Assembly (NCBI GenBank): GCA_024704765.1 | Contig: JAKMXF010000022.1 | Coordinates: 248,001-312,000 of the forward strand | Direction of reading: 5' to 3' | Source: Oopsacas minuta | Lineage: Eukaryota > Animalia > Porifera | DNA: 64,000 bases | Part shown: in pieces, positions 48,252 through 64,000 of the stretch | Layout of the letters: each line of letters begins with the position of its first letter | Position numbering within the stretch: position 1 is the first letter of the stretch | The notes under the pieces: model-generated | Told to the model about the DNA's origin: nothing | Seen by the model: only the letters and a program-made list of their open reading frames with translations | Database searches by the model: none | Made by a program: the position numbers and the translations under genes

Positions 48252-48860
48252 ATGGCCACTGAAGAAAATTTTATTTTAACTACCACAACTGAGAATAGTT
48301 CAGAGGTTCGGACACCTCCTTACCCTCCTCTCTGCTACGAACTCAAACTAGTACCTCCTGTTATCTATCAGTCACGTGCATTAAGGATAGAATTCAGGAA
48401 CTATTATGTAAATGAAATATCTATTAGAGCAATTTTCGAACGAGATGATGCTACACATTATTTCGTACTTGTTGACAGCTATTCTTTAATGCCAAACTGC
48501 CACACAGAACAAGGTTCTCATGACAGATTTGACATAGCTCTTGAGCTTCCAGAATCTTCAATTAATTTGTGTAAGATACAAATATTTTGTTATCAACTTT
48601 CTCAAAACTGGTGTTCATGGAGACTTAATAACATCAAACTATTCTCTATCACAGAATCTATACTTCAAGTTAAAAGTAAAGTAGACATAGAGCATGAAGA
48701 TACGAATGATACTGTGAAACTAATTAAGTCTCTAACATCTGTTCTTCAGGATAATATTACGTCATCTAATAGAACTGATAATATAGATACAAACACTAAA
48801 TTGACACCTCCTATCACAGGACCATGTTACAATATACAACTGCTATTGTGTGATCAATAG
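48252..48860 (+). CDS. NICN1: Nicolin-1 (tubulin polyglutamylase complex subunit)
   Basis: IEFRNYY...ISIR, YSLMPNCHTEQGS, QLSQNW and the terminal CYNIQLL follow the NICN1 pattern. Confidence 0.75.
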   Translation: MATEENFILTTTTENSSEVRTPPYPPLCYELKLVPPVIYQSRALRIEFRNYYVNEISIRAIFERDDATHYFVLVDSYSLMPNCHTEQGSHDRFDIALELPESSINLCKIQIFCYQLSQNWCSWRLNNIKLFSITESILQVKSKVDIEHEDTNDTVKLIKSLTSVLQDNITSSNRTDNIDTNTKLTPPITGPCYNIQLLLCDQ

Positions 48861-49007
48861 CACTTATTCTATAAGTTAAACATATTTAGAGGGAATTTAT
48901 TTAATTTTCCTTCCTATCTACATTAATTGTGGCTTTGAATTGATACAATATCTGTTTTATATTACATATTCATTGCTCAACCAATTATTAGCTATCCAGC
49001 TCTCGAT

Positions 49008-52000
49008 ATGAAGTATAATGCAATAACATTAATTTCCCTCATTTTATGTCTCTACCTCCCACACCCATCCCTGACTACACCTGTCTTCATCTGGTCCAAC
49101 AGGTAGGATAATATCTCATCTTTTGCACTCCTATTGAATTGCTATTTTTATGTACTTTAGAGATCGCCAGCTATCTAGAGGGACTACTCACTACCTTGGA
49201 AATGATTTAAGTTTCTTCTCATTTGATTACCAGATTCTAGACAACATCAAGAGAGCCGCTCCTGACGTTATCTTCGCTTTCGTTACATCTCCTGTAAGTT
49301 TAGTTTATGTTCTTATCCATGTTGAATTATTCTAATTTTACATGGTGTATCAACACAGAGAAAGTATTATTGTTCATAATTTCCACCATTAATCAGTGGT
49401 ATAGGCACGGATGATGATTGGTAGGGTTGGTTAGGTAGGGATCAGGATTAGTAGGACCCTCTTGTATTATAATTTGTAGAAATATGAACTCCGACCTATC
49501 ATTGGTAGGGCATGCCAACGCTACCATAGCCTACGTTTATAGTTAATTGCTATAATTGATCATTTCTCTACTTCTTCTACTTAAGCTGTTCTGTTTTAGT
49601 TTTCAGTTCCGTGTTACTAATACCATAAATACTCCAATCTATTATTAACTATTTTTCAAATTAACAATATAAATTCATATAATAAAAAATATCTACCAAT
49701 TTATTATTAATAATTTTCTCTATATTCAATTAAACTATTATACCTAAGAAGTAATAACGTAAGCTAACCAGCCCAGATATCTAAGAAATTCACAAATTCC
49801 AATAGGCAATAATTATGTGATTGGTAGTATGTTGTAAGTTATTACCTCTGTTTCTGCTCTGATTCCTCTTGATCATATTTATATGATTAATTAAGCATAA
49901 AGTGATATAGCATACACGAATTTTACTATTAGTAATTGCCTGATATTTTTACACTATATTATTACTAATTAACTAACCAATTTATTGCGAAACTACCTGT
50001 TTTTTATCATTTCGTTATTTCAATCTATATTTGTATTAATATACTGTAATTTTTCCTAATAAAGATTTGTATATTACAATATCCTTACTAATCAATATTC
50101 ATTATTATTGTCTAATATTGTATTCACAGCTTGCTCTTGACGATCTAACAACTGTATACACAAGTGATAATGATGCATGTGTCCATAACACCAAGGTAAT
50201 GTTAATGCTTATCCTATTTATAATGGCTCAAAATTCCAAACTCATACTTATTTTTCTTGCAATCGGGCCCCATTTCCACTACTCATTTCCTTCATCGCAT
50301 CGGTTATACTTGACTGTTGCTATATTATGAATGATAGCGATCATTTTCATTGAGATACACGAATCAGTTTGGGCATTCTCTGACTTTCAAATTATATATC
50401 TGTTTACTCTAATAGAATATTTGTTCATTATATCCTTCTACTGGTAGTGAAGATGCTTTAAATTTATATTAAACCATCTAATCATTTACTAGATGTTTTG
50501 ATTAGCTTGTTTCGTAGATTATTTTATATTTCTTTCTTTAGAATGCAATTCAAAACTCTATTTCTAGTCTTTTTATTGACGAACTATTCCCTGGATCAAA
50601 TTCGATCTTAACTGATCTTAAAAGGAGTTTTTCTAAGTTTGAGGATTACAAAATGGTAGAAATCTCATCAGACGGTAAGTTTATGGGATAACCAGTCTTT
50701 TATGGTATTTCACATTTCCTATTTTGCATATTATCTTTACTGCAAAAAGGTTGGGAATCGTGATCTATAGTCTTAGCTATATTGTATTCTGTATATGTAA
50801 TCTACGTTATAGTGTTTAGCGTTTGCAATACCCATCATCATGCATCACTTATCCAAATAATGTTTCTATTAATTGTGTAACCTAATAGTGCTTAGCTACA
50901 GAAAAACTCCTCAAATCATGTTATACAGACTCATCAATGACTGTATTAACCTTTAGTCGCATAGCCCGATAACTGACACCTAGCTATCCAACGGGGGTGT
51001 TGTCATTCGCGAATGACTGATATGTCTGAAATCCTCTATTATATAATTCAATGGAATGGTCAGTATATATTTTCCTATTCTACCATATTAGTAGACCATG
51101 TGTACAAGGAAATGGCTTGGAAATTTTTAGTCTAGGTCTAATGAGCGACGGGGTCCCGAGGGTTCTCCAGAACTCTCGAGACCGCCTTCGCTCATTGAAG
51201 AAATAGAATCGCTAGCCATCTCTAAGGCTCTTGGACTGTGAGGGTGTATATAACTAGTCTGTTGACTTGGTCACCATGAATATAGATAATCCTTATGTGA
51301 ACGGAACAATAACAAATGACAAAATTCTTCTGATAACTTACATTGGATCATGCAAAATCGGCGGAAAATGATAAATCATCATGGAAAATGCTGTGTAATC
51401 ATCAATGTGTTTGCTAAGTCAAAGTTTAGATGCACAACAAGTTGAAAATAATTGTGAATAACGAGTATGAAATACTATAGATGGATTTGAAGTCACTACT
51501 AGGAAATAAAAATATGGCAGAAAATGGCATATAAGTATAGTCATGGATGAAGTTATATATATATATGACAGTTAAAGGGTTAAGTAAAAGGTGAACTAAT
51601 TACAGTGTGGGGTGATTTATGATGTAAAATTATGAGAGACTTTGGAATGCCGAATAATTGTATTTCCACCAGTGACCATAGATATGTGTACTTATTATCT
51701 GTAGCACGTATCAATACTATGTTTGTATTAATGTCTACTATGTAAACGTATTACAGTTTCCAAACTTGAACTATAGCCAAAATACTTGAGAAACACAATG
51801 AATTTCATTGGATTGTGTAGGACTGTAAGATCTATATTCCTTATTGTACAAAAGTGGCCTATTAAATCAAACTCGTATACCAGAACTAATCCTCAATGCA
51901 ATATGTTTATACTTATAAAACGTGGAATCATTAAAATTATTCATTAATAAACCTATGTCTACAACTAAAGGTTATGGACCAAGATTTGGTTATCACTTAT

Positions 52001-52865
52001 AATTACTTCTTTAACACGTATTCATTAATTTAATGACTATTCATTGATTGCTCAAACAAAATTTGTTATTTCATCTTAATACTTCGCTTCTTCTAGCTTC
52101 TTGTAATATTATTATATTTGCAACAAGACGAAAACTCTGATTATCCTAAATTAACCTTCACAATAAATTCTAAGCATAATTAGCTGCCATAGACGAAGAT
52201 TCAATTTCTTGATAAACACGCATATGATTTTGTCTTTAATACAATAATACTTTAAACTTGATACATTTTGGTATCTATTTTATGGATATCATTTCTAGAA
52301 AAGTCTTTTAATATCTTATTATAGAATTAATTAACAAATAACCGGATATTGCATCTTATGGTTTTTGAGATTAACTATGATTTGTTATATCAGTTAATAT
52401 TATACAGTGATAACTTATGTCAGAGATGGAAATGTACCAAATCATTTCTCTTAAACATTTTCGGTAATTTTAATCTTGTTATTCTAGTTTCTTAACTACA
52501 GATAAAGGTAGGTAGATAAGCTATAAGTATTATCAATAATACACTTGGTTACCCCTCCCTCTTTTCTAATCTATCCATAAATACCTGAAAATTATAACAC
52601 ATCATATGACATACCTTGAACTCTGATTAATTGTACATGTGGATAATTTCAGAATTTATTAATGATACAGTACTAGCATCAAATTACGAATTATTTGACT
52701 TCCCTAACTCCCATTCTCAACTTAAAAGAGATATTTTCTGGAGTTAATTCTGATAAGAATAATTCCGAATATATCTATGATTTCAATGTGTTATTCTTTA
52801 GATGAATTTACTGATAAACTCAAGTTGCACGATAGATTGATAGTGATCATTACATCTGCTCTACC
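49008..52865 (+). CDS. Probable V-ATPase accessory subunit Ac45 (ATP6AP1-like), N-terminal exons; 3' end not resolved
   Basis: Exons 49008-49102, 49161-49293, 50130-50195, 50542-50674, 52653-52742 and 52802-52865 are phase-compatible. They give a signal peptide, then TPVFIWSNR...FAFVTSPLALDDLT...NAIQNSISSLFI, paralleling Ac45 VPLVLWS...FLQDKLSIEDFT...NALDLAPSSLVL. This gene is not in the ORF track. Confidence 0.6.
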
Positions 52866-53634
52866 GTAAGTTGATTTCTGGTAATATTTCTTTCATCTTT
52901 TTAATAGCATTAATATACTCCGAATAAGGACTTGAATCATTGTGTTAGGGGAATATGTATTATTTTTTATCTTTCAATTGTGTTTTGGTTTTAACTATAT
53001 CCGTCTTGCGAAATTTGTTCTTATCTTAGTTGTGCAACTCGAACGTTTGCATCAAATTTCTCGTAATTGTTTAATGTGCACTTAATTTAATTTAGTTATT
53101 ATCATGTTTACGTCTGTTTCTCCTACACTATGCTAAAGTCACCTTATCGGTTCGAATCACATTTACATTTTACTTCCAAATTAAGAAATTCTCATTGGTC
53201 CTAGAGTTTTACCACTCTCTCGAATTCACCCAAGAGATGGCTTAATTGCTTAGCTCTTCACACAAATACTATGTTACTACACTATTCTAATCTACACATT
53301 GCATGTAACAGTCATGACTTGTTATATTTGAAGATATTCTTATAATATTCTGAATAATTTATTAGCTCTTAGAAATAGTTTAAACACATAATCAAGCTTG
53401 TTATTTAATTTAAATTTACTAAAATTTATCTCATTTAATTAGTTGTAACGCACTGCACCTGTTGGAGCACCCTTTGCCAAATTGAGCCAATACAATCCTG
53501 TATGCAAATTAGTGCCTATCTTAAATTAACGTGAACTCACTGCTTTTCCAAGCAACTTTTCATCTACTTTAATGATTTTTTCTTACCTTTAACTCTCATT
53601 AGTACGCGACTCTTGAGAATACTTCCACTTTATA

Positions 53635-53787
53635 CAGTGGAACCTCGTTAATACGAACACGGTTGATACGAATTTTAAGAATAGATATTTACATAAAATC
53701 AGATTCCTGCAATGCTTATTCAATTGGTATTACTCCGGATCAAGCGGACAAATTTCCGCTGGTGTTCGTATTAACTAGGTTCCACCG
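53635..53787. mobile_element. Tc1/mariner-pogo-type MITE
   Basis: 26-nt TIRs CAGTGGAACCTCGTTAATACGAACAC (53635-53660) and 53762-53787 match at 24/26. TA on both flanks. Confidence 0.88.
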
Positions 53788-54820
53788 TAGTTCCCATCCA
53801 ATTGATGAATTTTCCTTCAATCAAAAGCTCCTACATAGAATACGATATTTGACTGCCCATGCAAGCAAATCAACGTTGTTTATGATTAGAATGTAAATAG
53901 AAAATAAATAATGAAATACTACCAGTATAGCATGCATCATATTCGGCCGTCAACAAGAATCTTTATGACGAATATTATTGAATACATGTGATCATTAGTG
54001 ATTCGAAATATTATTGAACTCTCGCAAGTACATTTCAAGATTTGTACAATCTTCCATTTATCTAGTAAAACACAACAGTTCTACGAACCACTATAGATAT
54101 GATTGTAATTACCAAATTCGTTTTCTTATTTCTTTTGAATTCATTTTGATTTCCAATCTTATATTCCTTCAATAACTTTAAGGTTTATACCACAAAACAT
54201 ACGCTCATCGGGGTAGTTATATAATTTCCTTAATACTCAGAAATTTACATTTCGTATTGACTTTCCATAACCAGAGTTTGACGCATGTGATAAACCGACT
54301 TTACAAGACACTTTTTCTTATCAAGACTCTCTTACTTAACCGTGTGTCGATACACTTTTCCATGAAAGATTTAGACCCAGTCCATATGAATATAATTGAA
54401 AATATTGATTATATTGAATATTTTGGATTAATCTGGTTTCCGCTTCATTGGAACAAACATTCCAGGACGAATGTGCCCCAAATTGACAAATCTATGCAAT
54501 CTGGGCTGAGCAGCATATACTCCTATACATTTAGAAATTTTGTTTATGAAAGATTCCTGAGACTATTCTTTCGATTTCCTAACAATTCTTAAGAGTGATT
54601 GTTAGATTCTCCAGTATATAAATTTATATTCCCTATCTTTACCTATTCTTCAGCTTGACAGCTATCAAATCGACTCATTCATTAAATAATTATTTTTATT
54701 ATGTTATGTATTATTACAAAAATATGTATAAATTATTGCTGCCACGAAGACTTGTCGCAAAAATTACTGCGATTTAATAGATATAGAATTGAATAAACTT
54801 TTGTAACCGAGAGGTCGCAT

Positions 54821-55279
54821 TCAGTTATATTTGCGTAAATTATAAGCGTATTCTTGTTCAATAGCACTTTTGTAACTCATAATTATGTGTGTTAGACTCG
54901 CCTTCTCTTGTATTAGAAATTGTTTCTCCTGTCTGAGAACTTCTATTTCGTTCTGGATTACTTCATCTTTTACTCGGTATCTTTCCCTCATGCTCTTTGC
55001 TGCCAAATTATTCCTTCCTTGGTATCGAAGTTTCTTTATCAATCTTTCCTCTTCTGCTGTGAAGAATCCAGATTCTAATATTTCATTTAATTTCCTCACG
55101 CTTATGTCAAATGACACTTTTTGCTTGTCCACAAGACTTAGGAAGTCTCTGCATTTGGGGAGGAGGATAGCCCAGTCTGCCTTCAATATTAGTACAGCTG
55201 TTTCACATTTATGTTTGAGAAACTCCAAATCTACTTGACTGATATTAGTTGGGAGTCCTAAGAAGATATTCTCACTCAT
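54821..55279 (-). CDS. Maf/CNC-like bZIP transcription factor, paralog 1
   Basis: Intronless, 152 aa. EHR-like ISVRKLNEIL...FTAEEERLIKKLR, basic region RYQGRNNLAAKSMR (N-x7-R) and zipper heptads I/L/L/L/Y. A TATATAAA lies at 55333-55340. Confidence 0.8.
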   Translation of the reverse strand: MSENIFLGLPTNISQVDLEFLKHKCETAVLILKADWAILLPKCRDFLSLVDKQKVSFDISVRKLNEILESGFFTAEEERLIKKLRYQGRNNLAAKSMRERYRVKDEVIQNEIEVLRQEKQFLIQEKASLTHIIMSYKSAIEQEYAYNLRKYN

Positions 55280-56430
55280 GTTTTTTTACTGTTATATTTG
55301 TTGATTATTGATATTTACTTTTAATTAACCAGTTTATATAGCTCACTAATTGCGTAGTCAGCTTTCAATCTTACCAAGTGGTATTCTATTTAAAGAATTA
55401 TTCGATACATCTCGCTTATAACGGAAATACACTATTTATTATGATTGACAGCTAACTTATTCCAAAAAATTTTACGATGTCAATTTCATTAATTAGTAAT
55501 CTTACAGTTTGAACTTACGTTTATTACTCTATATTTTCTTGTTACTTTTGATTTTTTTTTTTATTTAGAATTAACACCCGTAAATTATCTGTTTTTAATG
55601 CTATTTTTGGAACAATTAATCTATTTGCTTGTTTCGAAAAATAGCATTTTCTTAAAATTCGCGCCATTGAAAGTTGTGCCATATGATATGTCACACTGGT
55701 ATTTAATTTCGGACAATATTTATATTCTATTATTTGGCAACAAAGATTATGTTTCACAAAGACAAGTGGACCGATCGATTAAAAACACCGAGGCCTGTTT
55801 TCCATTCAGCGCATTATGACTATTACTTACTGATTCGTTGTGTTACCTTGGCTATTCTAATCAAAAATTTAGAATCTGTCGCTAAAATTTCTAATTTTCA
55901 ATGTCAAATAATACCTTTCAGTTGATCAAGTTAAGTAAAATAAAGCCTATGAATAAAATAATTGCCCTAATAATGAATGATGCATCCAAATCCTGTATTA
56001 ACAATAATTGCAAAGCTTCTAAGATAATCATTCTTTAATTGTGATAACTATATCTCCTCCTCAAATTTGATTACATAATTAACACACGTGGTTTGATTGT
56101 GCTTAACATAAGGCCTATCCTTTGTCGGTTCTGAGTATTTAAACTCTTTTCAGCTAGTTTGATACCAAAACTTTTTCTCGAACATTTGTATATATATTTA
56201 TTTATGAATAATATTTGAAGTCTAACTACCCCTTCATCTTCCTATTTGAGTATGTTAATTATGAATTAAATATCTTTATTCAACTAGCATTTTAATTGTT
56301 ATATTTACACACATTATACAGCACAAACATAATAAGAATTAACCGCAGAAGGAGAGCTGCTTGAAAAATTTGCCGCGATTGCTAAAGACTGTTCTAACTG
56401 GAATTACATGCATTTTATCTAGAACTAAAT

Positions 56431-56886
56431 TCAATTAGCCATTTCTTTTTGGTAGAATGAAATTTCTGAGCTTAGATTTTCCATCTCACTGATGAGTGCA
56501 CCTTTTTCTTTCATCAGTATTTCAATTTCAAATTCTATGTTTTCCCCTATTTTGCGGTAATTGTCTCTCATTTTCCTCGCTGCAAAATTATTTTTCACCT
56601 GATATCTGAATTTTTTGATTGCCTTCACTTCCTCTGTCGTAAAAAATCCCGAGATTAGTATGCTGTTCAGTTCTTTAACTCCGATATCAAATGCTACCTT
56701 CTCCCTATCTATGAGAGTCAGGAAATCTCTGCACTTGGGAAGAAGCACGTCCCAATTCTCTTTTAAGATAGGGATAGCTGATTTGCATTTGTGACTGAGA
56801 AATTGAAGTTCGCTCTGACCGATGTTCTCTGGGATAATCATGCAGAATCCGTTTTGATTTGACTGTGTTGAATCATTCGATGCCAT
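56431..56886 (-). CDS. Maf/CNC-like bZIP transcription factor, paralog 2
   Basis: First ATG at 56886. LLPKCRDFL...IGVKELNSILISGFFTTEEVKAIKKFRYQVKNNFAARKMR followed by a zipper; clearly homologous to paralog 1. Confidence 0.8.
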   Translation of the reverse strand: MASNDSTQSNQNGFCMIIPENIGQSELQFLSHKCKSAIPILKENWDVLLPKCRDFLTLIDREKVAFDIGVKELNSILISGFFTTEEVKAIKKFRYQVKNNFAARKMRDNYRKIGENIEFEIEILMKEKGALISEMENLSSEISFYQKEMAN

Positions 56887-58207
56887 CAGTACTGTTTGTA
56901 ACACCTAATATTCTGTTAATTTGATTTATTATTTTCTCACAAAGTATTTATACCTGTTCTTCTCGTTTTATTCGAATTATACTATCTACGTCTGTATTGG
57001 ATTTATAGTACCTGCTATACGTGATTGAACCACATGATCCAATTATTTTGCATTGAAATCTACAAAAATTTTAATTGAAAGTTTTTCCAATTCCACATAA
57101 TCCATATTGTGATAAACGCATTTTCTTGTAACGAATTAATTACTATCCTGTTATTGTAGTTCACAGTATAGTGCTTATACACAACCTACAGCACGTGCGA
57201 GTACCACTAGGGTTAAAGTACATTACAGGTATTATTGCTCAGCTAAGCATCCTTGATCTAAATATTTCAATTTGCTATTTGACAAAGTTACAATCAACAA
57301 ACTTTAAATTCTGGAGAAGGTGAGTCAAATACGCAATGAGCAAGCATAGTAAGTGAACTATATCGTTGGCATGAGGGTTACACACCATAAGTAATAATTG
57401 ACATTTGTCATGTTTCATGAAATTTGGCAGTAGCTGGCATATTCTACTCCAACAAGATACAGTGTAATAGTAATACACAACAATATTAACTACTTAACAG
57501 CATGAGTGAGTAAGCTAAGGGGCGTCCCTTCCTGACCCCGCCATCCCTACGCCTATAGTTACAATCTTGTACCAAGCTGGATGACGATTTAATATAAGTA
57601 AGTGATCTTACTGGCGGAGGGAGAACTTGTGAGATTTTGTGTATATGGACTTATTTTTCAGATTTGTTCTTAACTTTAACCCACATGTTGTAAACGGTGT
57701 GATTTGCATAATTTGCTAGCACCAGCATCCTATTCACCTAGGCATTTTACTACATGCTACACTCAGAATGACCCATTATCTTATTCTTTAGTATCTGATA
57801 TTCATTTTAATACTTAATTGAAATTCCCATATATCTTTGTTGTTTTATTACGGAAATACACTTAATTGATTCGATTTTATATTTACAGCGCCAATTACAA
57901 TGGATCATTGTGAAATTCGTATTAATATAACCATGGATAAACGTACATTTTAGGTTCAATTCCAATGTTATTGTTCCTCTGTCCATATACATTGATGTTC
58001 TTAATATAGTGAACTTAGCATTTGACATTATTTACGAAACATAAATCTATTCCACTAATTGAAATTTTTTCGAATAAATATTGCTTTTGCTCGATTAATT
58101 ACATAATTAGTTGACAAATTCACTCGAAACCCTCTCGTTAAAAGACATTTGCAGTTGAAAATTGAAGATGTCAGAAGATTTGCTAAAATATTCAAAAGCG
58201 TTCATTA

Positions 58208-58360
58208 GGGGCCGTTTAAAAGTTTCGTAACGCTACAAGGGGAGGGTATGGTATGTGAAGTGTGACAGCCCGATTCATTTTGTATTACAAAACAATGAAA
58301 AGGGAAGGGAGAGGTCAAAAAATTGGGGAATTTTGCGTTACTTAACGTTTGAACGACCCC
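58208..58360. mobile_element. PIF/Harbinger (Tourist-like) MITE
   Basis: TIRs GGGGCCGTTTAAAAGTTTCGTAACGC and 58335-58360 match at 21/26. Left flank TTA; the right flank is ATT, so the TSD is not perfect. Confidence 0.65.
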
Positions 58361-59774
58361 ATTTAGCAGAGCATGTCTACGTATGATATAGTGCTTTCTA
58401 CTCATATGTTTGTGAATAATTATTCAATAAAATTCGTAGACAAATACACTGTATATTGGAGCGGAGGAGCCCTGGCCCTTGGATCCGCCCCTGCCAAGTT
58501 TTTAAGTTTGATTGGGAACGGTTTAGTCCAGTACTCGTGGAACAACAATAGCCCTGTTATAATTACTATTTGTCTAGGAGCTGACTGGAGTATTGCTATA
58601 TCATATTCGGATACGTCTTACGTCTCTGAATTTTTAATTCATTTACAATCGAAACAGAAAATTACCTTACATAAGCGTCTTTATACGCACGAATTCAGTC
58701 TGTAGGATGAACTAGATATATTAACCACAATTGCAGAAGGTGGTGATATATGTTGAGGTTGTGGTTGCTAGTTTTACTGGAAATTACGCTGGGGGTTATG
58801 CTGATTAACTTATACTAATTTAAAATTTCATTAATTTGTATTCCGTAATTTGATTTACACATTATTAACGTTATACGTACAAGATAGATAATATTCCATT
58901 GTGTTTAATTATCCTGTTATAATATATGCAGCTGGATATAATATTCTCTATGATTAATAACATACATTCTTGGGGAATTACTTCTAGCAATATGGACGAA
59001 TTGTTTGATAGTATCATGTACATAAATAAGAATAATGAAATCAGTTAATTAACGTCGATATGACAGTTTATTGTTTCACAATTAACTACATACGTGTATT
59101 AGTTTGCATCTTACTGGAACATTCTAATATATACACTATAATATTGTGTTTTAAGAAAATATTACATGAGAAATCACGCCTTGAATGGGCATCATATATC
59201 ATACTAATTTGGACCTTAATTCATAAAATGACCTGAAATACCGTAACTTGATGTAGAATATTCTAACCCCAGAGATATTTTCTCAGGTTATAATATTGAA
59301 GACCAAGTTAGATCTCATTACAGCTACATGTCTTTTTTCATGCAACAGCTTTAGTATTGATATATATATTACTGGCAGCAGGAATTATGGATTAGCCTTA
59401 GCAAGTTGTATAGTAATTCAAATCCGGCAGAACCGGTCAGGCATGTCAGGCAATTGCATTACCACTTTTATTTTCTTCCGCTCGGCCTGAATTATAGTAA
59501 TTGATTTGAGGTCTTAATTAGTTGTATAAATATTAAAGTTTAACATTTTGCATGAGCTTTAATTGCCTACATTTACAAATAAGGAACAACTGTAAGTGAC
59601 TAACAATATGTAACTAGTTGAAAATTGGTAGAATATTTAGCTGAATATGTATTTGATGTAATTGTTTCTATTTGCTGTTGCTTGGGCTGCGATGTGTATC
59701 TGTTGTTTATAAATATTATTTTTACGGTTCTAATATTTTGGCTTTTTGCTTTTGCGCGTCCGTTGTCTGTATGT

Positions 59775-60350
59775 TTACTGGTGAGGTGTTGTGTGTTTAT
59801 TTTGATTCTCCCTCTCTTCTGCAAAGAATTTTTCGTACTGTTTAATCTCTGCTATCAGCTTCTCTTTTTCTGCTAACAGTTCCGACTTTTCTTTTTTGAG
59901 ACTTTGCAAGTTGCAAGAGAAACTTGAATCTTTAAGCTTGTACTTTTCCCTCATTACTTTTGCTGCTTGATTATTCCTACCCTGATATCTCATCTTCTTT
60001 ATTGCTTTCTGCTCATCCATGGTGAAGTAACCGGATAGCAAAATCCTATTCAGCTCTTTCACTGATACATTGAATGCAACGTTGTTTTTGTCTACTAAAC
60101 TTAGGAAATTTGGTGCTGTTGGTAGTGCTTTCCTCCACTCCTCTCTGAGCAATGGACTAGCCAATTGATATTTATTTACTATGTAATGTTTATACATGTT
60201 TGGTAATGTCTCAGCAGGGAGAGCGTAGCCATTAACATCTGTGAACTTAAATTCTAATTCTCTGTCTTCTCCTTGATTTGGAATACAAGAATCTATCAAA
60301 TTTGATGAGTTGCTTGATCTCATAAAATAATTATTTTTATTACTCAACAT
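59775..60350 (-). CDS. Maf/CNC-like bZIP transcription factor, paralog 3
   Basis: Intronless, 191 aa. FLSLVDK...VSVKELNRILLSGYFTMDEQKAIKKMRYQGRNNQAAKVMR followed by a zipper. A TATAAAAG lies at 60386-60393. Confidence 0.8.
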   Translation of the reverse strand: MLSNKNNYFMRSSNSSNLIDSCIPNQGEDRELEFKFTDVNGYALPAETLPNMYKHYIVNKYQLASPLLREEWRKALPTAPNFLSLVDKNNVAFNVSVKELNRILLSGYFTMDEQKAIKKMRYQGRNNQAAKVMREKYKLKDSSFSCNLQSLKKEKSELLAEKEKLIAEIKQYEKFFAEERENQNKHTTPHQ

Positions 60351-60914
60351 TTTAATATCTTGTATTCTACCTTTGAAAAGTGCACCTTTTATATTTATAC
60401 GATAGCTTCGATACTTTCAATTTCCTTTCCTGGACCTGATGAACATTTTATCAAATTGTTGATCTTTGTTCAATAAGTGTAGTTTCATTTATCAACCAAG
60501 TTTTTAACTTCTACCACTATATTTGGTAACGACAACATGTTATGTCTGGATTTAATCGATGAGTATTATGGCCTATCAAGTTTCATATTATAACCATGTT
60601 ATCTTGGGAAGCATGGTCAGTAGTTAGTGACATATAGAAACTATAGGCTGGATCTATGAAAGCTACGACTATCCATTGATTTGGAAGTTATCCTAATTTT
60701 GACTGGACCTTAATTATAATTTCTAAACTTTCCAAATACGTAATTGCTGTACTTAATAATAGTGTTTTCCCAAGAATTATTTTCTGTCAAGTTTGGGATA
60801 TAATTTGTACAATTATCCAATTAGTTCCCCTATATTTGTCTAGTGTTGCAAGAAATATCCAGTTTCATTAAATGACCTGCGTAATTTCTAAGATATGAAA
60901 TTGAACAAAGATGT

Positions 60915-60982
60915 CAGACCGTAGGAGTTGGTACGGCAGGTGCGGCGCTCGCCGCACCAATATTTTTGATTCCTACGTCCCT
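60915..60982. mobile_element. Short GC-rich MITE-like element with an internal palindrome
   Basis: Ends ACCGTAGGAGT / ATTCCTACGTCC are imperfect inverted repeats around a perfect 9-bp stem GGTGCGGCG-CT-CGCCGCACC (60939-60958). Confidence 0.5.
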
Positions 60983-63900
60983 AAGCTTACTTAGCTAAGT
61001 ACGTATATGTAGGAGAGATCCAGAATTGTTCAAATTGAGGGGCTGAGTTTTATAGTTGCGAGCACTTAAGGGGTCTGGCATAATTACTACTATATCTATT
61101 TACACGCAATCATTATTACATTGGTGGGCTTTGCTCCCATTAGAGCTCACCTCTATATTAATGTGTATATTTGATGAATTTTCGTGTAAAGAATGTGTAA
61201 AATATCGCGTTTCTACTTTCTAGCTTATTAATAAACGAATATTTTTAACGAATTTTTCGTGCAAAAATGTATTATAATTAAAAGTATCCGGTTTCTAGTT
61301 TCTACTGTACGCAGGTGACAGAATGGGCTCCGGCAAACGAGTTTATTCAAATAACAGTTTTCTAAATACTAACACGTTTTTGATTAAATGGTAGCATATT
61401 AGCCGATAATATTAATGTGTAAATATGGGATAATACTTTGGTGAATTAGTGTTTATGCTATTAAGTACGTTATAATGCTGAGTCTAGCTGAATTAATCCA
61501 GATATAGTGTCGGTTGCGGTCTTCAGTCGCTCACTGCTAAGAGCTCTTCAACACACCTTGGGAAACACAGTTTGACGCAGATTACTACAGCTCATGAGGT
61601 ATCCATTAGATTTCAATGGCAGGATGTTTCAAATTCGATATACGTATTTATTGGAACCCTGCTAATTGAACTTTCAAGGTTTCTAATCACCATACTGTTT
61701 TGAGATGCCCATTGTCCATGAAAACTATTCACTATTTCACACCCACTCATTCATACAGTATTATCCATAGTTTGTATACCATGATCTCAATTCCTATCGT
61801 TCCAATTCGTATCCTACAGAGAAACGCCGATTTGACAAAATGGTCCCTCGGGCCCTCCTATATATAGATATTTAATCTTGAACGTTTCTTTATGTTATAT
61901 AGAAATCCTCCTCCAACCAAGCGAGGTGACTCATTGCCTCAAAATTACCTAGAATAACAGCAAAATCTATTAAGCATATAGATCATTTTTGTCATAATTA
62001 TATAACACGCTACAAATTCATGAAAATGTAATGTTGTCACGAATGTTTTATGAACAAAATTATATGACCAAAAACAGTTTAAATTTGAAATCACTTCAAG
62101 TTACGTACCGATCCGGGACTTAATGTGCCGGACCTGTAGCGATCACATAGACTGCGGAGCTATCGGACTTAATAATTAGGTACTAAGTCCTCTAACAGTA
62201 GTGTTTCAGCTGTAAAAAGTTTTGGGACAGCAAGGTTAGGACAAGAAAAGTGTAGCCTAGAAATACTTGGATGAACTTATACAGGTAATATGTTATTATA
62301 TATCTTTTGTCAGCGATATTAATTCTATTATTCTGGGTCTTGATTACCATTACAACAGTGAATTTAGGATTGCCTTTCTTCTTTGTTCCTCCTCTTCTTA
62401 TTATGAGTGTTCAATTAGTTGAATTGTTTCTCATTAATACCAATTTTCATAAGCCAATACATTCTTTACTCTCTAGTTAGAATTACCCCCCCTAGCAGTT
62501 GTACCCCCTCCCCCAATCTGACGCTCCTTACCCCTAAATACCTCTACAAAATTATTGTTTACTATTGTGTCATTATTATGTTATCATTCATCCTACGAAT
62601 TTTCCTAAAACAATTATGAATTCTAGTATTTTTCCTACCCACAAGGATTCATTCAGTACAATTGTTCAACATTTCTTTGAATTAGTAATTTGAAACGTTG
62701 TTTTTAGTTTTTACCCCTAAGAGTTATCTCATACCATCAGTATCTTATATCAGAATTGTTTGGAAAGTAATATCTATTGTGAGATTGTTTGTTTGATTTG
62801 CTTAAATCAAGTTCACATATCTGCCCTTTGGTACACGCCTGGCAACATAGGTATTCTTACGTTTGGTAAACATCACACAATACCACATTGTTACCCTTAT
62901 AGTCCATTGAAGACATACTTCGTGGTTTGTGTACAATTCCGGCAATGAACTCTCGATAGAATATCACATTACTCATCGACTTATTTGGAGTTGTTTATAG
63001 TTGACACATCAACATTTACCCCGGTTCAAATTCACTACATTTATCTATTAGAACCAATGTAGATGACATACTCATAGGCATTGAACTACTCAGCTCAATC
63101 ATGTTAATGTGCTTAGCATATATTATGTAATTTTAATAGAAATTAGCCTTTGAAGGTAGTAGATAGCGAATAATTTTACTTTTTCTAATTCGCTAATGGA
63201 ATTACATTTAACGGTTTATAGTTATAATCTACTCTGAAATACGAGGTTGTTATTAGAAGTTACGTCTTATTGAGGTTAGTTAGGTCAACTCATGAGGACT
63301 CTGCCAATATTGGAAGGAGGGGCTACATATTTTCGCTATAGACTCCACGCCTTCACAATCTCTAAAATAATATCTATTCTGTAATTCATAATTTTATCTA
63401 AAATTCTATAATGCATGGGATAGACAAGTATATTGTTACATACAATACTCATTAGAATAGTGTTAATCTGTTATACCATGGGGACGAGCAGCCTTTGTTT
63501 TCAGAATCAATCTTGAATTCCCTCCAGTTAATACACTAATTATTTCATTGATCAGTGTTAAATGGAAAATAACAAATCTCTGTAATTTTATTCACGTCAA
63601 TACAATTTGGCTATCTCTACGATTGAAGATTCAAATTTGTTATCGATAGATTATTTCTTTTATTAATCAAATTTAATCTAAAATGTATCCAAATTCCTTC
63701 CTAAAATGACGAATTGTTAATGACTCTAACATATTCAATTTACGGAATAGATACATTAACCTTTCATTTTGATAAAATTTGTTATTTAATGTGATAATAT
63801 CAACACCTTGTTATGCTATATGTACCAGTACTAACTTTTGAAAATATTTAATATAAGAGACAGCAGTTAGCTATATTCTTATAATCTTTGAGGTCAGTTT

Positions 63901-64000
63901 TAAGTGGGACAAACAATTTTAGTGCCTATCCTAATGTTGATCTAATCAATACATAAACAGAATTACTAGTATGAGTATATGTAGCAGTTATTGAGTGAGC

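Follow-up and report, generated by a model that had tools for sequence, protein, structure and literature searches.

Among the CNC-type basic leucine zipper (bZIP) proteins, Nrf2 offers the closest described system with which the genes reported here can be compared. In the Nrf2-MafG-DNA structure the TGA half-site is read by Asn507, Ala510 and Ala511, and the phosphates are held by Arg499, Arg502 and Arg504, the last of which is clamped by Asp457 and Asp500; the replacements R502M and R504M each cost more than 30-fold in affinity, whereas R503M is neutral (PMC9756947). For the wider group, a MAF-NFE2 stem has been inferred by Jindrich and Degnan (PMC4736632). In glass sponges, the genome paper of Oopsacas minuta reports that many core animal transcription factors have been lost and leaves bZIPs unmentioned (PMC10280926), and that of Aphrocallistes vastus describes one bZIP 'of unknown function' (Avas.s001.g868), upregulated in the growing osculum (PMC10282587). 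On searching the literature, bZIPs and hexactinellids were found together only in the A. vastus paper. Here we describe a cluster of genes for very small bZIP proteins in a stretch of 64,000 nucleotides of O. minuta (assembly GCA_024704765.1, scaffold JAKMXF010000022.1, positions 248,001 to 312,000), referred to below as the window. Using sequence search and locus retrieval, three genes, A, B and C, were located in the window and a fourth paralog, D, just beyond it (locus L008).

Our analysis suggests that this quartet is probably an old tandem family of DNA-binding mini bZIP proteins of the CNC type, directed at a TGA half-site, without large effector domains and probably serving as obligate heterodimer partners. 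A preliminary description of this DNA had reported a tandem trio, and three co-oriented open reading frames (ORFs) are indeed present on the minus strand; however, the cluster is a quartet, with D on the plus strand, divergent from C and starting about 280 nucleotides (nt) past the window end. The basic-region motifs quoted at that time were recovered letter for letter (A, RYQGRNNLAAKSMRERY; B, RYQVKNNFAARKMRDNY; C, RYQGRNNQAAKVMREKY), all of them carrying RYQ-x-[RK]-NN-x-AA-xx-MR. In pairwise comparison B is 51 % and C 40 % identical to A, and in the GenBank annotation of the scaffold each of A to D is one single-exon coding sequence, with 152, 151 and 182 amino acids (aa) for A, B and C. Membership of the bZIP superfamily is evident from an invariant N-x2-AA-x3-R and from heptad leucines that are in register on one continuous helix. 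As had been supposed, the proteins are small and lack a large effector domain, since about 135 of their 151-205 aa are taken up by the DNA-binding module.

The CNC assignment is carried first by profile comparisons. A profile of 22 quartet proteins was run against all PDB sequences, and the best match was Nrf2 (chain 7x5e_B, 30.9 bits), aligned without gaps over accessory helices, basic region and zipper. C/EBP-beta reached 29.9 bits over the basic region and zipper only, followed by BACH1 (25.3 bits), MafB (24.4 bits), SKN-1 (22.4 bits) and MafG (16.1 bits). With a profile of the wider family, built from 50 small proteins, the ranking became sharper, at Nrf2 60.2, BACH1 47, SKN-1 42.7, MafB 41.1, MafG 34.7 and C/EBP-beta 24 bits. 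When 1.84 billion representatives were searched exhaustively with HMMER, 74 proteins were obtained at E<=1e-3, of which about 50 are small (100-200 aa) and share the whole module, followed by canonical CNC proteins (RRRGKNKVAA) and a few of the PAR type; none of the rows at this threshold has the NxxYA core of the Mafs. Among the canonical CNC matches is the cluster to which an 'NF-E2 45 kDa subunit-like' protein of Oscarella lobularis (XP_065839428.1, P0086) belongs. The canonical CNC hits P0059 and P0072 stem from samples for which no link to the sponge assemblies was found.

With the CNC proteins (Nrf2/NFE2L2, NF-E2 p45, BACH1 and SKN-1) the quartet thus has in common the accessory helices placed directly N-terminal of the basic region, without a gap. 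It differs from them by an extra conserved N-terminal helix (KC..A.PIL..W) and by its length, there being no long N-terminal region that could accommodate Nrf2-like regulatory or activation domains (Neh2/4/5-type, Keap1 motifs). The proteins had been viewed as hybrids that combine a Maf-like SV(R/K)xLN helix with a CNC-like core. On closer reading of the alignments, this helix sequence holds for A and C and not for B, which reads GVKELN. Moreover, the Oscarella NF-E2-like protein itself reads PVHELNRLL, and because a V-x-E-L-N helix is therefore present in a protein of that kind, no Maf/CNC hybrid needs to be invoked; the profiles favour CNC and the zipper is of the CNC type.

Counted from the invariant Arg, the d positions of the zipper are Ile, Phe or Val at +10, Leu at +17, +24 and +31, and Tyr at +38, and the a positions read hydrophobic, Lys, Lys, Ile, hydrophobic. 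All four proteins have Lys at a2, and Lys also occupies a3 except in B of O. minuta, where it is Met; this is the pattern of Nrf2 (LKDEKEKLLKEK). Lys or Arg at a2 and a3 together with Tyr at d5 are common to most of the mini proteins and the Oscarella protein, and in PAR-type rows a2 is Asn. A maximum-likelihood tree was computed from 88 rows and 84 columns; it is unrooted, holds no Maf rows and omits most PAR rows, as these have no accessory region. The A proteins form a clade (99/89) and so do the C proteins (98/92), while B and D are near-clades, each broken only by one very long-branched row, and the quartet lies on one side of a branch supported at 93/88. In this tree without Maf rows the quartet does not fall inside the canonical CNC clade (98/89). 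The mini proteins are thus CNC-like and stand outside the canonical CNC proteins, and their sequences would fit either derived CNC proteins or a separate branch of the MAF-NFE2 stem.

Numbering of the basic region was obtained by ungapped alignment onto Nrf2 498-518. Arg502, Gly505 (Val/Met in B), Asn507, Ala510, Ala511 and Arg515 of Nrf2 are kept in the quartet, and seven positions are changed, namely Arg499 to Lys, Asp500 to Lys, Arg503 to Tyr, Arg504 to Gln, Cys514 to Met, Lys516 to Glu/Asp and Lys518 to Tyr. The replacement of the Arg pair (R503/R504) by YQ and of the Cys (C514) by Met, to which the preliminary description had drawn attention, are hence present, and R503Y, R504Q, C514M, K516E/D and K518Y are fixed in all orthologs. 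At the same ungapped offset Nrf2 Asp457 corresponds to Leu76 of C, although the register is less certain that far upstream. Neither the CNC basic signature (R-R-R-G-K-N-K-V-A-A-Q-N-C-R-K-R-K) nor that of the Mafs (R-x-x-K-N-R-G-Y-A-x-x-C-R) is found in the quartet, all members having NN-x-A-A.

We read these changes as a remodelled grip on the DNA backbone and not as a new base code. Since every base-reading residue and Arg502 are kept and it is Arg504 and Asp500 that are replaced, the altered DNA specificity proposed earlier is unproven and is not adopted here; the base-contacting N, A, A and R are retained, and the changes affect mostly phosphate contacts plus the Cys position. If specificity were altered nevertheless, the candidates would be Met514 and the paralog-specific residues at 509 and 513. 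Position 509 is Leu in A, Phe in B (Leu in the B ortholog of L002), Gln in C and Met in D, and is otherwise fixed within each orthogroup; position 513 is Ser, Asn or Thr in A, Lys or Arg in B, Val in C and Leu or Ala in D. Across the wider mini family position 514 is occupied by Cys, Ser, Leu, Met, Phe, His or Tyr, a variety that looks like diversification of a contact residue.

The age of the family is apparent from other assemblies. In four of them (L001, L002, L003 and L007) all four genes recur in the arrangement seen here, A to C sharing a strand and D pointing away from C on its upstream side, and a further one (L004) contains B, C and D up to the contig end. A has orthologs in four other assemblies and B in five; the C orthologs (n=7) are 63-76 % identical and all contain RYQGRNNQAAKVMR. 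Within each orthogroup the basic-region signature is invariant. Ratios of nonsynonymous to synonymous substitution (dN/dS, Nei-Gojobori, NG86) range over 0.11-0.20 for A, 0.11-0.21 for B and 0.06-0.18 for C, and over 0.06-0.29 for all pairs with unsaturated dS; when O. minuta is one of the pair, synonymous sites have in most cases reached saturation, and the proteins and their signatures persist nevertheless. With ORFs intact in six assemblies, the genes are not evolving neutrally, and the shared order together with these ratios lies far beyond what chance would produce. A Trinity transcript of the glass sponge Vazella pourtalesii (EukProt, P0117) is identical to the C product of L004 in 206 of 207 residues, from which it appears that L004 is V. 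pourtalesii or something near-identical, and a second Vazella transcript (P0128) corresponds to the ortholog of D. Both genes are therefore transcribed in that species.

Similarly informative is the larger family to which the quartet belongs. About 50 clusters of mini bZIPs of 100-200 aa can be aligned to it along the entire module, and all four proteins display the hallmark of this radiation, a KC..A..IL..W helix ahead of the CNC-like helices and a zipper end that reads EI..Y. The named members come solely from glass sponges, namely V. pourtalesii and O. minuta (LOD99_3..., LOD99_2850, LOD99_9488, LOD99_13663), the latter labelled 'hypothetical' or 'BZIP domain-containing'. A word search seeded with the alignment of 50 sequences yielded only 20 proteins, none of which added a named taxon. 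Among the family representatives there are also shortened, acidified or recoded basic regions. The suggestion of a lineage-specific bZIP subfamily without a name is thus supported, with named members in glass sponges only and no description in the literature found, whereas the signature is not an isolated novelty, being one of many in a large mini-bZIP radiation. The quartet is an undescribed, lineage-restricted subfamily of CNC type and not a new category.

If true, so large a radiation of conserved, clustered and minimal CNC-type proteins would constitute an unreported gain in a lineage known for its losses. Within it the quartet is the best-behaved member set, its base-reading core being complete, its synteny deep, its purifying selection strong and its TATA promoters simple. 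It may serve as a natural experiment on the contribution of Arg503/Arg504 and of the redox-sensitive Cys to CNC-type DNA binding, and on the limit to which a bZIP can be reduced; it is also relevant to the form that the MAF-NFE2 module may have had before small Mafs existed. A bolder picture, which we consider doubtful though worth stating, is that the quartet forms the oldest, still DNA-reading core of a radiation restricted to glass sponges, in which readers, recoded readers and natural dominant negatives make up a self-contained combinatorial dimer network that perhaps partly replaces the lost transcription factor families, with C and A responding to stress or immune input of the interferon regulatory factor (IRF) type; or else that the mini proteins are a third, unrecognised branch of the ancestral MAF-NFE2 gene and not derived CNC proteins.

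Another O. minuta scaffold (JAKMXF010000111.1, L010:12574-13949) encodes a 313-aa bZIP in two exons, with a KC..A.PIL helix in the C-terminal exon and a canonical-looking basic region, RRKAMNKKAAEECRRRKK, located 5.6 kb from a mini bZIP (P0015). Its architecture, like that of other O. minuta mini-bZIP clusters, agrees with the quartet in the KC..IL..W helix, the CNC-like helices and a zipper with Lys or Arg at a2 and a3 and Tyr or Phe at d5. It keeps RRK...NKKAAEECRRRKK, in contrast to the quartet, which has RYQ...M and the full N-x2-AA-x3-R, and among the members of the radiation it may be one of the less derived.

An AlphaFold2 model of C, computed from a 22-sequence alignment, has a mean predicted local distance difference test score (pLDDT) of 83, exceeding 88 from residue 51 to about 180. 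Helices are predicted at 51-63, 72-78, 82-85, 88-94 and 97-104, followed by a long helix at 111-186 with pLDDT above 95. The model superposes on the bZIP chains of MafG, MafA and MafB that include the extended homology region (EHR), with root mean square deviations of 2.0-2.7 A over 89-101 residues and Z of 6.0-6.7; a Foldseek search of the model against the PDB gave no match at E<=0.001, so that it is the structural re-alignment, with its TM and rmsd values, that makes the Maf/CNC fold match usable. The EHR fold of the Mafs is thus present, but the same region aligns ungapped to Nrf2 and other CNC chains, and the fold therefore does not discriminate between the two families. None of the Maf or CNC matches in the PDB covers the first helix (51-63), and its KC..A.PIL..W pattern is conserved over the whole mini family; for these reasons it can be regarded as a family-specific addition.

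Each protein comprises one family-specific N-terminal helix, CNC-like accessory helices, a basic region, a five-heptad zipper and little else. Under the reading preferred here, the proteins would bind as dimers to a TGA half-site of the AP-1/CNC type, with a changed set of backbone contacts and no redox sensitivity through Cys. Nrf2 needs a small Maf partner. The Lys residues at a2 and a3, as in Nrf2, would make the quartet proteins obligate heterodimer subunits; two Lys a positions would clash in a homodimer or in a dimer within the quartet, and so the partner is probably another bZIP from outside it, perhaps another mini bZIP or a Maf-type protein. In the lack of an effector domain, the outcome would be set by that partner, although the conserved N-terminal motifs of C (FxFTDVNGYALP) and D could recruit cofactors. 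The paralog-specific residues at 509 and 513 may confer a distinct fine specificity on each gene, and an IRF-like element would control the expression of C and A. Counting of g-e' charges among A to D gave no clear preferred pair.

Several observations weigh against this interpretation. Basic residues occupy a2 and a3 in every family member examined too. The canonical CNC clade (n=15) excludes all the mini proteins, in an unrooted tree that holds no Maf rows. The top chains of the Foldseek search are Mafs, with weak E-values (>=0.25), and the language-model neighbours found by an atlas feature search are small-Maf-like clusters, with MafG-like ones heading the list. Finally, DNA binding could suffer from the loss of Arg504, combined with the changes Lys516Glu and Lys518Tyr.

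The last point leads to the possibility, unlikely in our judgement, that the proteins have lost useful DNA binding and modulate other bZIPs through the zipper only, in a dominant-negative or titrating role. Such a role would agree with the lack of an effector domain and with the loss of Arg504, where a Met already impairs Nrf2 and for which both Asp clamps map to other residues. However, N507, A510, A511, R515 and R502 are invariant in 23 out of 23 quartet genes, in species with saturated synonymous sites, and a constraint of this kind can be understood only in a helix that has remained a reader of DNA. The basic region of C, moreover, retains 9 Lys/Arg vs 10 in Nrf2 over 25 aligned residues, and the siblings with degenerate basic regions exemplify what relaxed constraint leads to.

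It is quite improbable that we are dealing with small-Maf orthologs that have diverged, or with derivatives of Mafs, in which case the proteins would be the sponge equivalent of MafF/G/K and generic partners of CNC proteins, even though more than one likeness points that way. They resemble small Mafs in size, in the absence of an activation domain and in an EHR-like cap joined to a long bZIP helix, and SV(K/R)ELN resembles the Maf EHR motif as it was quoted in the preliminary description. Matches to the Pfam family bZIP_Maf (PF03131), the best structural superpositions (MafG, MafA and MafB) and the MafG-like clusters at the top of the atlas search can be added. Nevertheless, PF03131 also matches canonical CNC-type proteins; the core is NxxAA and not NxxYA, and Gly505 and the ungapped spacing fit CNC. 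Maf chains score below Nrf2 by 6-15 bits with the quartet profile and by 19-28 bits with the family profile, and the exhaustive search gave CNC proteins and no NxxYA row. The zipper has K/K at a2/a3 as in CNC proteins, with the Nrf2 alignment continuing through it, and the small Mafs have been placed as a bilaterian subfamily by Jindrich and Degnan (PMC4736632).

A descent from the PAR/C-EBP lineage (NNxAAKxSR-type; HLF, NFIL3, C/EBP-beta), with a helical cap gained convergently at the N-terminus, appears very improbable. An NN-x-AA-[KR] core followed by an acidic residue after the invariant Arg does recall PAR proteins (KNNEAAKRSRE), bZIP_2 is the best Pfam match of A, and besides the C/EBP-beta score noted above PAR-like proteins reach up to about 45 bits. 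These matches are, however, limited to the basic region and zipper, with no homology in the accessory helices, over which the CNC matches continue ungapped for 30-40 more residues; PAR-type rows have Asn at a2, where the mini proteins have Lys/Arg, and they have Ser, not Met, at the Cys position, and with the family profile C/EBP scores 24 bits vs 60 for Nrf2. That the genes are unexpressed or decaying duplicates, the case which the preliminary description had itself named as its refutation, is hardly credible, for although a search of sequencing runs found no O. minuta run on record as RNA, the intact ORFs, the low dN/dS, the conserved TATA boxes and the Vazella transcripts of C and D speak against it, and neutral decay is excluded.

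The positions of genes, domains and promoter elements are compiled in the table below.

Table. Coordinates of the mini-bZIP cluster, counted from the first letter of the window; domain limits are residues of the product.
Feature	Position	Strand	Description
Gene A, mini CNC-type bZIP	54821..55279	-	152 aa, single exon; ORF and annotation
Gene A, extra N-terminal helix	aa 15-35
Gene A, CNC-like helices	aa 36-80
Gene A, basic region	aa 81-103 (nt 54971-55039)
Gene A, zipper	aa 104-140
Gene A, TATA box TATATAAA	55333..55340	-	begins 61 nt upstream of ATG
GATTGAAAG element upstream of A TATA box	55362-55370	-	from sequence
Gene B, mini CNC-type bZIP	56431..56886	-	151 aa, single exon, ATG at 56886
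Gene B, basic region	aa 90-112 (nt 56551-56619)	-	own conserved signature RYQ[VM]KNN[FL]AAR[KR]MR
Gene B, TATA box TATAAATA	56945..56952	-	begins 66 nt upstream of ATG
Gene C, putative poly(A) signal ATTAAA	59558..59563	-	begins 212 nt after stop codon
Gene C, mini CNC-type bZIP	59775..60350	-	191 aa counted from first ATG; annotated with 182 aa from second Met
Gene C, extra helix	aa 51-71
Gene C, CNC-like helices	aa 72-116
Gene C, basic region	aa 117-139 (nt 59934-60002)
Gene C, zipper	aa 140-176
Gene C, TATA box TATAAATATAAAA	60387..60399	-	37-49 nt upstream of ATG
IRF/ISRE-like element GAAATTGAAAG (GAAANNGAAA)	60414..60424	-	15 nt upstream of C TATA box; another GGAAAG precedes
Gene D (LOD99_13663), RYQGRNNMAAKLMR	~64280-64897 (L008:10001-10618)	+	205 aa; beyond the window

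Two starts deserve comment. For B, the GTG at 56904 proposed earlier is replaced by the ATG, in agreement with the annotation. For C, translation most likely begins at the first ATG and not at the annotated second Met (window 60323-60350), because the ML start is conserved in orthologs, an A stands at -3 and the TATA box lies at a short distance upstream. The N-terminus of C is variable and contains the conserved motif F-x-F-T-D-[VI]-N-G-[YF]-A-L-P, and D orthologs possess a short conserved N-terminal motif, RPRPNKLYLESLGI. A B ortholog (L001:13150-13338) has an in-frame upstream ATG that gives a 191-aa ORF, an extension conserved nowhere else, and a second D-like copy (LOD99_9488, P0010) is found on another O. 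minuta scaffold.

When A, B and C were scanned with Pfam, no domain other than bZIP was detected. The matches are weak yet real: A exceeds the cut-offs of bZIP_2 (28.5 bits) and bZIP_Maf (26.3 bits), and C that of bZIP_Maf (24.0 bits), while B remains below, marginally so for bZIP_Maf (21.2 bits, cut-off 22), and has 23 bits for bZIP_1, likewise below the cut-off.

Each gene of the quartet has a conserved TATA promoter of its own. A TATA box was found 44-83 nt upstream of the ATG in 21 of the 23 quartet genes compared, and its flavour is characteristic of each orthogroup (TATAAAAGGTAC in C, GTATAAATAC in B, CTATATAAG in A and TATAAATA in D). All five A orthologs have TATATAA, between -53 and -65, and all six C orthologs have TATAAAA(GGTAC), between -44 and -83; of the six B loci, four (the window, L003, L004 and L007) keep GTATAAATAC, between -59 and -66. 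Upstream of the TATA box, three of five A orthologs contain GAAAATGAAA, to which the window has a near match. The sequence GAAANNGAAA, the classical core of the IRF site or interferon-stimulated response element (ISRE), is located 21-38 nt upstream of the TATA start in five of six C promoters and three of five A promoters, always in one orientation, against a background of 0.155 per kb for the IRF-like element with both strands counted; the C promoter of L002 has two copies of AAAATGAAAGTG. It is our hypothesis that a sponge IRF binds these elements of the C and A promoters. One further IRF-like match (GAAATCGAAAG) lies at 54568-54578, about 250 nt downstream of the A stop codon.

At the other end of C, the ATTAAA listed in the table is likely to be its poly(A) signal. 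Depth was assessed from contigs aligned to the window, for four runs of one sample in which this DNA is present. Three runs are flat at a depth of about 100-170, save for a spike at a repeat at 58.25 kb. The fourth, X4, for which no library type is recorded, varies strongly, piling up more than 1500 contigs on 59550-60350 alone, where their depths sum to a value in the 10^5 range. The lower edge of this pile falls in the 59550-59743 depth bin and its upper end at about 60350-60370, so that it covers the C ORF and the 3' sequence to ATTAAA and ends just below the TATA box, which is suggestive of an abundant unspliced C transcript of about 0.8 kb.

The bZIP cluster is situated in an ORF-poor stretch of about 15 kb (48860-64000 and beyond), the rest of the window being densely filled with long ORFs, and its spacers of 1.2-3.9 kb suggest large regulatory regions. 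The spacer between B and C contains a short multi-copy repeat (58227-58359), where the DNA runs show several contig breaks or joins, and in run X1 the depth of the repeat bin is 391 vs about 103-107 on the flanks. In one relative, the spacer between D and C accommodates a FLYWCH/MULE transposase-like gene of 471 aa (L007:4341-5756).

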